Part shown: piece by piece, positions 48,338 through 62,108 of the stretch
How positions within the stretch are numbered: the stretch's first letter is position 1
Layout: each line of letters opens with the position of its first letter
DNA from: Thalia democratica
Taxonomy: Eukaryota
Assembly: GCA_965202585.1 (NCBI GenBank)
Contig: OZ241828.1
Location: forward strand, 31,248,001-31,312,000
DNA length: 64,000 nucleotides
Direction: 5' to 3'
Position numbers and translations under genes: made by a program
Notes under the pieces: model-generated
What the model was told of the DNA's origin: nothing
Seen by the model: the letters and a program-made list of their open reading frames with translations, nothing else
Database searches by the model: none

Positions 48338-48437
48338 NNNNNNNNNNNNNNNNNNNNNNNNNNNNNNNNNNNNNNNNNNNNNNNNNNNNNNNNNNNNNNN
48401 NNNNNNNNNNNNNNNNNNNNNNNNNNNNNNNNNNNNN
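48338..48437. other. Assembly gap (100 N)
   Basis: Run of N. It probably hides unit G exon 1 and the start of exon 2, so the true size likely exceeds 100 bp. Confidence 1.
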
Positions 48438-56563: not shown

Positions 56564-56721
56564 NNNNNNNNNNNNNNNNNNNNNNNNNNNNNNNNNNNNN
56601 NNNNNNNNNNNNNNNNNNNNNNNNNNNNNNNNNNNNNNNNNNNNNNNNNNNNNNNNNNNNNNNNNNNNNNNNNNNNNNNNNNNNNNNNNNNNNNNNNNNN
56701 NNNNNNNNNNNNNNNNNNNNN
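56564..56721. other. Assembly gap (158 N)
   Basis: Run of N. Confidence 1.
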
Positions 56722-58296: not shown

Positions 58297-59052
58297 TTAA
58301 GTTGAAATCTTTTGTAGCAATTTTTCATATTCTTCTTTGAAGTAACTGTTTTCATTTTTAAGTGAATTATTTTCACTCTTTAGCCTCATTGTTTCTTCAA
58401 TTCTCATTTTCATTTTTGAACTCAGCATAAGAATAACTCCAACAAAAGCTACTGCTATAGCAAAAATAACAAACAGCACATTTGAGCTTGGGTTGTGAAC
58501 AAAACCCTGTCCAATAATAGACTCTGCATTCGAGTTTGTTGTGTTCACTAAGTTAAGGCTTAAATTAAGAGAACGATTTTTTTCTACGAAGATCTCTGTA
58601 GATAAGTTAGCTGTATTTGGCTTCAAACAAATGAATCTCTTTTTAAAACCCCAGTCTTCAATAACAAAGAGTTTCTTAAAGTAAGGAGTGTAGGAAGCTA
58701 TGTTTACGTCTTCAGACTTGTTTCCAACCCACCTATACAAATCACCGTGCAGTGTTTTGTTATAAACTATATTGTTAGTAAATAACCGGATTATTTTATC
58801 TCCACATTTCTTAATATCAAGACCTATATGGTACTGCTGAAATCCCCAATGAAACTTGCACGATGAGTCCTCAATCTTCGCGATGCTCCTCAAAGCGTCT
58901 CGATCCCTTGAATTTGTAATAGGGGCCAATATCTGGCCCCTCTTTGCACACTCCACCTTGGCCTCGCAAGCCAAAACTCTCTTTTTATAATAAGTAAAAG
59001 TTCCTGTTGGCGTAGTGACAGTCGTAGCACATGTAGGATTCTTATACCTCAT
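58297..59052 (-). CDS. Divergent C-type-lectin-like domain membrane protein
   Basis: 251-aa ORF with CTLD-like pattern C...AKVECAKRGQILAPITN...YHIGLDI...KKRFICLKP, a hydrophobic segment VLFVIFAIAVAFVGVILML and a coiled-coil-like tail. A phase-0 acceptor at 59083 suggests an upstream exon. No signal peptide located. Confidence 0.75.
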   Translation of the reverse strand: MRYKNPTCATTVTTPTGTFTYYKKRVLACEAKVECAKRGQILAPITNSRDRDALRSIAKIEDSSCKFHWGFQQYHIGLDIKKCGDKIIRLFTNNIVYNKTLHGDLYRWVGNKSEDVNIASYTPYFKKLFVIEDWGFKKRFICLKPNTANLSTEIFVEKNRSLNLSLNLVNTTNSNAESIIGQGFVHNPSSNVLFVIFAIAVAFVGVILMLSSKMKMRIEETMRLKSENNSLKNENSYFKEEYEKLLQKIST

Positions 59053-59234
59053 TGCAAAATTTGTGCGAAATATTTTTTTAAGCTGAAAAAAACATAATTA
59101 GAACTACTTTATGTATCGTTATAAATTATGTATTCACGTATCTTGTTTTTACTAAGTTAGGTTTGTAAATTATTAATGTTTTTTTATAAACTTATATTTT
59201 ATTTTTTAGTTCAAGTATTCGAGGAAAGACTATT

Positions 59235-62108
59235 ATGAAACTGATTACGAAGCACATCATTTTTTCATTACTGTTTAGTATGAGTTTTTCTGAAACAAAA
59301 AGTAAGTTTTATATTGTTACTTAAAATTATATTTAGTGTTTTGTCAAATAATATTTCGTCTAAGAACTTTAACCATTTAAATTTAAATTTTACGTCATGG
59401 AAAAAACGTCAAACTGTATCTCATGTGCATGATACGATTATTGAAATATACTCTTGTATACTAGGTCTATCGACCAAATTTGATCCCATTTGTTGTCGAA
59501 GAAAATTTTTACTTAGTTCTTTTTAAATTTTTCTTCAATAACATATTTTTAAAAGAAAATTATTTTACAAATTTGTTATAAATTTTATTCATACAATGAC
59601 TTTATTATAAAACTTTGTAACAATTCCAAACTTACAGTGCTACAAAATAAAAAGCTCAAGCAGTAAAAGTAGAACACTGCAATACACGAAATGGTGACAG
59701 AGATATTTTTGTAGCCGAAGGTAGTTTTAGTAAAAGATGCCCAAGAAAAAAATCAGAGTTTACATATGTTACAAACCAAGAAATTTCAAAACTTTCTAAT
59801 TGCATTAAACAATTGGCTGTTGAAAGAAATATTTTTGATGTAAAAGTCTTGCCAGTAAAACAGATGTGCGATAAAAAATGTATAGACACAAATTGTTCAC
59901 TGCACTACGTAATTGATCTCGAAAATTATGTAACAAGTTGCAAATCAAAGACTTTTCAACAACAACATTTCAGTTTTTGTGCTACAACAGACTCAAAAAA
60001 CAATGGCGATTCAAACTACATTGTTATTGTGTTTGTACTTGCTTTTGTTGTTCTTTTAGTTGTTGGTATTTTGACGTACTTCTATCGAAGATATAAAACT
60101 TCAAATAATTCTGAGACGGTAAGTCGAATAATAAAAAGTATTTGTTTTAGCATTGCTTTCGGTCATTGTTTTGTTTTAATTAAAAACCTTAAAGTTATTT
60201 TTTACGCAGGCAAATGATGAAGAAAAAATAACATTCCTAAAAGGAAATAAACAAACAAGTTGTGACAGTTTAGAAATAATAACTTCAGATCTTAAAAGAG
60301 AGAACCACAAATCATTAATTCAAGAAATCGATGAGCTACCTTCTACGTCATCTAGCAGCACAAGCTCTTGTGAAAAAACTGATGAAACTTTTTCATTAAA
60401 AAACTGATGAAAAACAAATAAGTTCGCAGAGTTTCGCAAACACAAACAACCGTAAGTACATTAAAAAGGAAGGTTTTTAAAAACAAAATTAGAAGCGGGT
60501 AAATGAGTAAAGTGTATAATAATATAAATTTAAATTTTAGAAGTAAGTAAATTTTACTACATAAGTTTGTTTTTAAATTTTATTTTATAAACAGCACTTG
60601 CTACTGATTACAACTCAATGCCACTCAGCGAATTCTTAATTACAAACAAAAACTTCTACGTTGCCTACCAACTCGTTTTGCAAGTAAAATATTTTTTTAA
60701 TTTTTTAAACTGCAGATATCTTAAAAAATTTTTAAATATAAAAAATAACTAAAAAATGTTTAATGAAAACAAAAATTTAGAATAATTATGTTTGAATAAA
60801 GCTTTTATTTTACTTTCGTGATTATTTATTAAACTTCTGTAGAGTGATCTGCTAATTAGTTTGTAGACTGTAACCAAAATAAATAAAAGAGGCAAAAAAT
60901 GTTTTTTTACAAAATATTACAATTAAATTGTAATCAAAACATTTTAATATTTAATAGTCTAATTTCTTTATATGGGAAATGTAAAATAGTCTGTTATCTG
61001 TACCAGAAAGTTAAATAATGAAATGTAAAAAAAAAAATTATACACTTTTTCAGATCATTAGAAAAATAAAGAAACTTCATAATCAAGATTTTTGTGTTGG
61101 GTCAAGCTTAAAAGTGGACAACATTCTCATTTTTAAGCAACCGTTTTTACCACCGTACAACATAGGATTCAAATTCATAGAAATCAACTTTCAGAAGATA
61201 AGAAGTAGTTATTTTTTATTTGTTACCTTAAAAAAACTATTGATTATAAAATATTTAGAAAGAAATTTATCTAAATTGAAGACAATCAATGAAAGCAAGT
61301 TGCAACTAGATCAAAAGAAAATAGTAAATGAAACAATAAGGAATAAAATCAGTCGTCCCAAAACAGTTAGTAAAAATTAATGATTAATTTAAGCGTTGGT
61401 ATATTTGTAAAGCTGTACCATTTTAAATAAACAATTACAACTAAAAAAAAGTGATACGTACATAAGTGAAACTAAAAAAATAAATTAATTAGTTTACTTA
61501 AAAATATTCTTATAAAAGTTTAGTATAATATTTTAGACTGAAAAGTTTTCTAAACAAGAAGATATAAAACAGCTGTCCATTCTAGTTCTAGATATCTTGT
61601 CTGCTTATGTCAAACAAAAATTTTCGATTACTAACCCTGAGTATTTCGAAAAATATAAAAAATTTTTGGAAGGAAAGAGTATGTTTTGGCAAAAAGTTCC
61701 AAAAGAACTTTTAGAAATGGTGGAAGGTATTGAAATCTGGATAACTGTTAGTTTATAATAAAACTTGTGCCTCAAACCTTATTGTTTAAAGCAAATAAAT
61801 GAATAAATCTGTCTAAAAAACATTAAAGTTCAAAATATTATTTATAAAATGTTGTGTTTAGTATTAAATAAATTTATAAAGTATTGCATAAAAAACATTA
61901 TACTGTTTATGGTGAATTATTTTTCATAGAAAAGCATACTAATAAAATAATATTTTATTAGGTTGGATTAATAACGGATGGTTGTAGTGAGAAACCCAGT
62001 GAAAGGCCTGACATCGAAGAATTTGAAAGAAAGTTTATAAGCCTGCAACTTGAACTAAATGCTCTTATTGAAGAGGATAAACAGAAATACGGAAATGACA
62101 TCATATGA
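59235..62108 (+). CDS. Single-pass receptor-like protein with Cys-rich ectodomain and degenerate kinase C-lobe (pseudokinase); frameshifted in this assembly
   Basis: Exons 59235-59301 (signal peptide MKLITKHIIFSLLFSMSFS), ~59655-60118 (ectodomain and TM), 60210-60451, 60595-60683, 61054-61204, 61259-61365, 61537-61746, 61962-62108. All have GT-AG ends and matching phases from 60595 onward. The exon-2 acceptor is unresolved, and there is one extra A near 60400. Confidence 0.7.

Follow-up and report, generated by a model that had tools for sequence, protein, structure and literature searches.

Does the interval 59235–62108 on the + strand of this stretch of DNA encode a hidden receptor pseudokinase, and is such a gene isolated in its genome? 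The window analyzed here is the whole 64-kb stretch, corresponding to C4:31,248,001–31,312,000 of an 802-Mb animal genome. On the basis of manual splicing, an initial annotation had proposed that this interval contains a hidden gene for a catalytically dead receptor kinase without an N-lobe, possibly carrying a degenerate C-type lectin domain as its ectodomain, and had regarded this combination as unusual in animals. Our analysis suggests, with a probability of roughly 0.72, that the gene belongs to a lineage-restricted receptor family in which a degenerate lectin-fold ectodomain is combined with a tail consisting of a dead kinase C-lobe, that the members of this family are paired with a second gene in a cassette, and that the copy in the window is frameshifted.

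The gene turned out to be a member of a tandem array of about 29 copies. Searches detected 29 paralogous copies of exon 2 and, with an exon profile, 29 copies of exon 6, all located at C4:30.95–32.27 Mb in an array of about 1.3 Mb, and weaker relatives with the arrangement from exon 2 to exon 6 were present on C9 (8.05–8.10 and 19.95–19.98 Mb), C7 (27.56 Mb), C5 (66.36–66.38 Mb), and C10 (20.36 Mb) and at C4:67.9 Mb. We fetched 27 loci and generated gene models from tblastn anchors and phase-consistent splice sites. The window copy consists of eight exons on the + strand, and all of their borders, as read from the sequence, are canonical GT/AG. All five peptides quoted in the initial annotation were found in these exons on the same strand. 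The signal peptide, the Cys-rich ectodomain, the transmembrane (TM) segment, the Ser-rich linker, and the tail were each mapped to exons, and this layout recurs in the paralogs. Exon order, lengths, and phases are the same in about 25 paralogs, with a constant length of 89 nt for exon 4 and of 210 nt for exon 6 and a nearly constant one of 144 nt for exon 7, indicating that the exons are far beyond chance open reading frames (ORFs). The tails were free of stop codons in 19 of 28 loci (the 27 fetched loci and the window copy), in which the splice sites and the lengths and phases of the exons are conserved, and at least seven copies had complete ORFs of about 460 amino acid residues, not counting exon 1. 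Outside this genome, the relatives found were short genomic ORFs from marine metagenomes and no others; a search of representative proteins with exon 2 yielded eight short genomic ORF calls and nothing full-length. No description of such a receptor family was found in Pfam or in the searched literature, salps and tunicates included. Within the scope of these searches, the family is lineage-restricted, with about 29 tandem copies on one chromosome and distant copies on others.

To what extent the tail resembles a protein kinase was assessed by profile–profile comparison, with 29 kinase domains without introns, located in this genome with Pfam PF07714, as the reference. Comparison of the alignment of 19 tails with these kinase domains by hhalign gave a Prob of 92.6, an E-value of 4.4e-7, and a score of 48.8 over 162 columns. 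Tail columns 4–205 were paired with kinase columns 57–227 of 228, a span bounded by the hinge (E-Y..G.L) and the last ...RP... motif. Column shuffles, 12-column block shuffles, and the reversed profile scored 13.4 ± 2.4 (maximum 19.6), 17.1 ± 3.5 (maximum 29.3), and 14.9, respectively, and the score of the tail profile was 9–15 SD over the shuffles. When the profiles of exons 5a, 6, and 7 were compared one at a time, which does not require splicing, they matched kinase columns 105–127 (LHs..I.H.DIkp.N), 171–213 (k.DVWSlGv), and 225–244 (..P..RPs..el) with E-values of 0.086, 0.015, and 0.00024, respectively, and these three matches fell in the correct kinase order. An ad hoc kinase hidden Markov model (HMM) also aligned the paralog L022 over the catalytic loop, DFG, APE, and DvWS positions with 18 bits. 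The by-eye alignment of the tail with kinase C-lobe subdomains in the initial annotation was borne out by these comparisons, and the homology of the tail to the protein kinase C-lobe is well supported at the level of sequence profiles. No single kinase or kinase group stood out as the closest when the tail profile was compared with each kinase singly by hhalign.

In the window copy, the predicted C-lobe is distributed over five exons. Exon 4 (60595–60683, +), which begins the tail, matches the kinase hinge, αD, and the start of αE in the hhalign comparison (LATDYNSMPLSEFL...). Exon 5a (61054–61204, +) matches αE, the catalytic loop, and β8/DFG in the profile alignment. It is followed, after a 54-nt intron, by exon 5b (61259–61365, +), which occupies the position of the activation segment and is conserved among paralogs with 6-nt, in-frame indels. 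Exon 6 (61537–61746, +) matches αF to αH, with EDIKQLSILVLDILS at the DvWSlGv position and a strongly conserved VEGIEIWIT at its C-terminal end, and exon 7 (61962–62105, with the stop codon at 62106–62108, +) matches αH/αI, with LITDGCSEKPSERPDIEEF at the ...P..RP... motif of subdomain XI, and ends in a C-terminal helix.

The residues required for catalysis are missing from the tails. The HRD position is occupied by [VL]G[STK] in 19/19 copies, within the consensus [VL]G[STK]xLxVxN; the window copy reads V-G-S-S-L-K-V-D-N, the catalytic Asp being gone and the Asn kept. The replacement of HRD reported initially as GSS is supported as to the loss of the catalytic Asp, and the residues that align with HRD are VGS. 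The DFG position reads INF, ISF, LRF, LSF, or IKF, so that Asp is replaced by N, S, R, or K in all 19 copies (INF in the window copy), which agrees with the reported absence of DFG, and the APE motif is absent from all 19, exon 5b of the window copy included. Conserved positions are the Asn of the catalytic loop, the Phe of DFG, the Asp of αF, and Arg-Pro in subdomain XI. A Gly-rich loop, the VAIK Lys, and the αC Glu were not detectable, and nothing aligned N-terminal of the hinge, as had been noticed earlier for the loop, the lysine, and the N-lobe. The TM exon and exon 4 are separated by 475 nt, of which 242 are taken up by exon 3, leaving no room for hidden N-lobe exons. With the catalytic Asp, the DFG Asp, the APE motif, and the whole N-lobe lost, the tail is predicted to be unable to bind ATP or to phosphorylate substrates. 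The dN/dS of the tail was 0.24–0.36 (p ≤ 1e-5 in each of eight pairs), and the tail is clearly under purifying selection as judged from these substitution rates. The ectodomain exon, with a dN/dS of 0.27–0.58, evolves faster than the tail.

The N-terminal part of the receptor is encoded by exons 1 and 2. Exon 1 (59235–59301, +) contains the start codon and a signal-peptide-like segment, MKLITKHIIFSLLFSMSFSETK, in 22 codons plus one base and ends at a phase 1 donor, GTAAGT; homologues of this exon lie upstream of exon 2 in the paralogs as well. Exon 2 (59664–60118, +) encodes a Cys-rich ectodomain of about 118 residues, followed by a single TM helix, IVIVFVLAFVVLLVVGILTYFY, and an RRYK stop-transfer signal. 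The ectodomain has eight conserved Cys residues, among which C25, C46, C68, C72, C77, C92, and C105 (numbering of alignment A1) are invariant or nearly so. An AlphaFold2 (AF2) model of the ectodomain generated from 25 sequences had moderate confidence (pLDDT 64.6, pTM 0.58). All of the 50 top structure matches of the predicted fold were C-type lectin-like domains (CTLDs), and the Foldseek lists for PDB and AFDB were dominated by CTLDs. At the sequence level, Pfam Lectin_C (PF00059) matched none of the 25 ectodomains at E ≤ 10, the comparison of the ectodomain profile with PDB sequences retrieved no CTLD, and weak sub-threshold matches to DUF5332 were obtained by Pfam for four members. The WIGL, EPN/QPD, and WND motifs are absent from alignment A1, and the ectodomain of the window copy contains no Trp at all. 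If the domain is a CTLD, the absence of Ca- and sugar-binding motifs would place it among the non-sugar, "lectin-like" type. We consider it quite probable, on the strength of the moderate-confidence model, that the ectodomain is a degenerate and probably non-sugar-binding lectin-like domain. The degenerate C-type lectin domain suspected initially is upheld by the predicted fold, which matches only CTLDs, and finds no lectin signal in the sequence itself. A PAN/Apple domain, our first guess from the Cys spacing, was dropped when the fold searches gave CTLDs only.

A second gene is located head-to-head with the receptor gene. This partner gene (58297–59052, −) is a 251-residue ORF predicted to encode a CTLD, a TM helix, and a short coiled-coil tail, in this order, and its ATG is 183 bp from that of exon 1. 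The AF2 model of the partner was a confident CTLD (pLDDT 88.8), and its best Foldseek matches were CD94/NKG2A, NKp80, NKR-P1, and CLEC5A, with E-values of about 3e-6 and TM scores of 0.7–0.83. The ectodomain of the receptor showed no profile similarity to the partner CTLD family. The array contains 29 copies of the partner, one lying head-to-head and 0.6–1.5 kb upstream at essentially every array member, and the pairing is also found at the distant relatives on C7, C5, C9, and C642 and at C4:67.9 Mb. The partner was therefore co-duplicated with the receptor, and the duplicated unit is a two-gene cassette. The same cassette of partner and receptor is present in a Tara Oceans contig, L081 (2300–7000), which is 93% identical over 4.5 kb to C10:20359563–20364115, indicating that a close relative of this animal lives in the ocean plankton. 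The partner belongs to a wider family with at least 172 matches across the genome, for which Pfam gave no hit. No signal peptide is encoded in the partner ORF, although its lectin domain is N-terminal of the TM helix. An in-frame acceptor-like site (tttttttcag) is located ahead of the ATG (59053–59110, −), and 2.4 kb of upstream sequence yielded no convincing exon for a signal peptide.

The continuous spliced receptor-pseudokinase of the initial annotation could not be derived from the window copy itself. Exon 3 (60210–60451, +), which encodes the acidic, Ser-rich cytoplasmic linker, reaches a TGA codon at 60405–60407 when read in the frame of exon 2, while the strong donor (C followed by GTAAGT, cut at 60451/60452) and the phase of exon 4 require the +1 frame. 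DNA alignment with the paralogs revealed 16 extra nt in the window copy, which are part of a 15-nt direct repeat, AAAAAACTGATGAAA, at 60373–60387 and 60398–60412; the lesion as a whole spans 60373–60412. In every other paralog examined, except for a twin copy, exon 3 keeps a single frame over both of its halves. The insertion was checked in two DNA read runs. An independent Logan read contig spanning 59150–61036 had zero differences and zero gaps relative to the window, indicating that the insertion is real and that the frameshift is not an assembly slip, and a second Logan contig matched the twin copy. The twin, L021 (C4:31,134,404), is located 173 kb upstream, is 99% identical in exon 2, and has the same insertion. 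With the 16-nt insertion and canonical splicing, the predicted product of the window copy is a protein of 239 residues composed of the signal peptide, the ectodomain, the TM helix, and a 65-residue stub, without a tail. This frameshift had been overlooked in the manual splicing, and the window copy as assembled does not encode the receptor-pseudokinase proposed for it. The exons downstream of the lesion are stop-free with intact splice sites, suggesting that the lesion is young, and, its pseudokinase exons being still intact, the window copy would be a pseudogene of recent origin or else a truncated decoy. As far as the genomic sequence can tell, the copy at the window locus is decaying or truncated, and annotators of this locus should not splice through the frameshift.

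We propose that the product of the family is a type I single-pass protein in which the signal peptide is followed by an ectodomain that is small and evolves fast, by the TM helix and about 75 residues of linker, and finally by a tail of about 230 residues descended from a protein kinase C-lobe. The ectodomain may bind a ligand, which is more likely to be a protein or a surface pattern than a sugar bound in a Ca-dependent manner. By analogy with other receptor pseudokinases, the conserved dead C-lobe could act as a scaffold on which active signaling partners dock or are controlled allosterically. Each copy would share a short bidirectional promoter region with the NK-receptor-like lectin gene, whose product may be co-expressed with the receptor and may act as a co-receptor. 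A more far-reaching proposal is that the cassette, amplified about 29-fold and with its modules shuffled, constitutes an undescribed system for the recognition of non-self or pathogens in a pelagic tunicate-like animal, in which the two products form a co-receptor pair and the dead half-kinase acts as a scaffold; we regard this as tentative and rather doubtful.

Several results weigh against the proposed architecture. The Pfam scan of single exons retrieved no kinase family at E ≤ 10 and no lectin domain in any exon, the comparison of the single-exon profiles (exons 5a, 6, and 7) with PDB sequences retrieved no kinase, and an HMM of the family tail gave no significant match to single kinases. 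The kinase fold of the tail is predicted from profile–profile comparison; the exon joins, expression, and co-expression are predictions from sequence, and the scaffold and co-receptor functions are proposals of ours. If the likeness of the tail to kinases were convergent or due to chance, the tail being a helical domain of other origin, the failure of these searches would be expected, and so would that of an ESM-Atlas feature search with exon 6, which returned low-score, unrelated clusters only. Such an origin is very improbable in view of the margin of the profile score over the shuffles, the 162 colinear columns from the hinge to subdomain XI, the ordered landing of three singly tested exons on the expected kinase segments, and the conservation of the Asn, Phe, Asp, and Arg-Pro positions described above. 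With kinase ancestry accepted, the family might still possess a complete two-lobed pseudokinase whose N-lobe, encoded by exon 3, has diverged past recognition. Exon 3, with 72–80 residues, sits where an N-lobe of about 85 residues would be and is similar to it in length. However, the hhalign alignment was not extended when exon 3 was added to the tail profile, and a forced global alignment scored lower than the local one. Moreover, exon 3 encodes a low-complexity sequence rich in Ser and acidic residues, and its dN/dS of 0.5–0.98 (about 0.5–1.0) is indistinguishable from neutral, in contrast to that of the tail, whereas a folded lobe should be constrained. A diverged N-lobe is improbable on these grounds; exon 3 is probably a disordered linker of about 75 residues, as its composition and substitution rates suggest, and the C-lobe-only tail remains our preferred interpretation.

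Whether the window copy could still produce the full receptor-pseudokinase is a separate matter. The frameshift might be bypassed through a weak phase 1 donor in exon 3 or by skipping of exons 3 and 4, and the intact state of every downstream exon and splice site would be consistent with this. Phase 1 GT dinucleotides do occur in exon 3 ahead of the stop codon, and exons 2 and 5a are both in phase 0, so that their direct joining would keep the frame. On the other hand, the bypass donors (GTTGTG and GTTTAG) are poor and are used by no paralog, and the twin with the same insertion has additionally lost the exon 4 acceptor (AG to AT). In addition, the dN/dS of the tail between the window copy and the twin was 0.47, above the family norm of about 0.25, which fits relaxed constraint. 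We therefore consider a bypass unlikely and the loss of the tail from the product of the window copy the better description.

Receptor pseudokinases and lectin-like immune receptors are each well known already. PTK7/CCK4, RYK, ROR, and ErbB3 are single-pass receptors in which an impaired but conserved kinase-like domain acts as a scaffold or an allosteric partner. These proteins keep a two-lobed domain that is recognized by Pfam, whereas the members of the array family have no N-lobe and fall below every Pfam threshold. In the NK C-type lectin-like receptors, which are type II proteins, the CTLD follows the TM segment on its C-terminal side, and signaling proceeds through ITIM/ITAM adaptors. 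The cassette resembles the NK receptors (CD94/NKG2, NKR-P1, and CLEC-2) in forming tandem arrays of fast-evolving lectin-like receptor genes, in the best matches of the partner ectodomain, and, in the predicted model, in the CTLD-type fold of the receptor ectodomain. In contrast to the NK receptors, both cassette genes have the CTLD N-terminal of the TM segment, and one of them carries a pseudokinase tail. Retention of a kinase C-lobe without an N-lobe is shared with human PLK5, a pseudokinase made of the C-lobe only (PMC6930252). However, PLK5 is a polo-like kinase that is cytosolic, present in a single copy, and of recent truncation, whereas the C-lobe-only state in the array family is old, is present in about 29 paralogs and in distant relatives, is maintained under purifying selection, and resides on a membrane receptor. 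The combination of a lectin-like ectodomain with a kinase-type receptor has an animal precedent in Hydra Sweet Tooth, described as a receptor protein-tyrosine kinase with a lectin-like ectodomain (Reidling, Miller and Steele 2000, J Biol Chem 275:10323, cited in PMC3531485), and, going by this description, the combination is not without precedent in animals. Several SWT/lectin-like domains are ascribed to Sweet Tooth, together with a tyrosine kinase that is complete and presumably active, whereas the array family has one small degenerate domain and a dead C-lobe.

The interest lies in the family and its cassette rather than in the window locus. The family is distinctive in that the C-lobe alone is kept under purifying selection and is joined to a fast-evolving ectodomain of probable lectin fold, and in that a second lectin-like receptor gene, arranged head-to-head, was amplified along with it. 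The family would show in a natural setting which roles a kinase C-lobe can fill when the N-lobe is missing, such roles being docking or allostery that involve no binding of nucleotides. Should the animal be a tunicate, the family also bears on the origin of chordate lectin-receptor gene complexes.

The array copies do not appear to have evolved as fixed units. The dS values of the ectodomain exon and the tail were often discordant, being 0.05 and 0.69 for the pair L042/L044 and 0.011 and 0.087 for the window copy and its twin, respectively. This discordance suggests that modules were exchanged among array copies by shuffling or gene conversion, and exon 7 of the twin looks as if it was converted from an L022-like paralog. 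In the read contigs, the k-mer depth was 5- to 10-fold higher precisely across exons 5a, 6, and 7 of the window copy (61022–61229, 61542–61749, and 61958–62061), which fits near-identical tail exons common to many paralogs. The window as a whole is very AT-rich, with a G+C content of 24.5%, and contains runs of N at 48338–48437 and 56564–56721, which are either assembly gaps or masked stretches.

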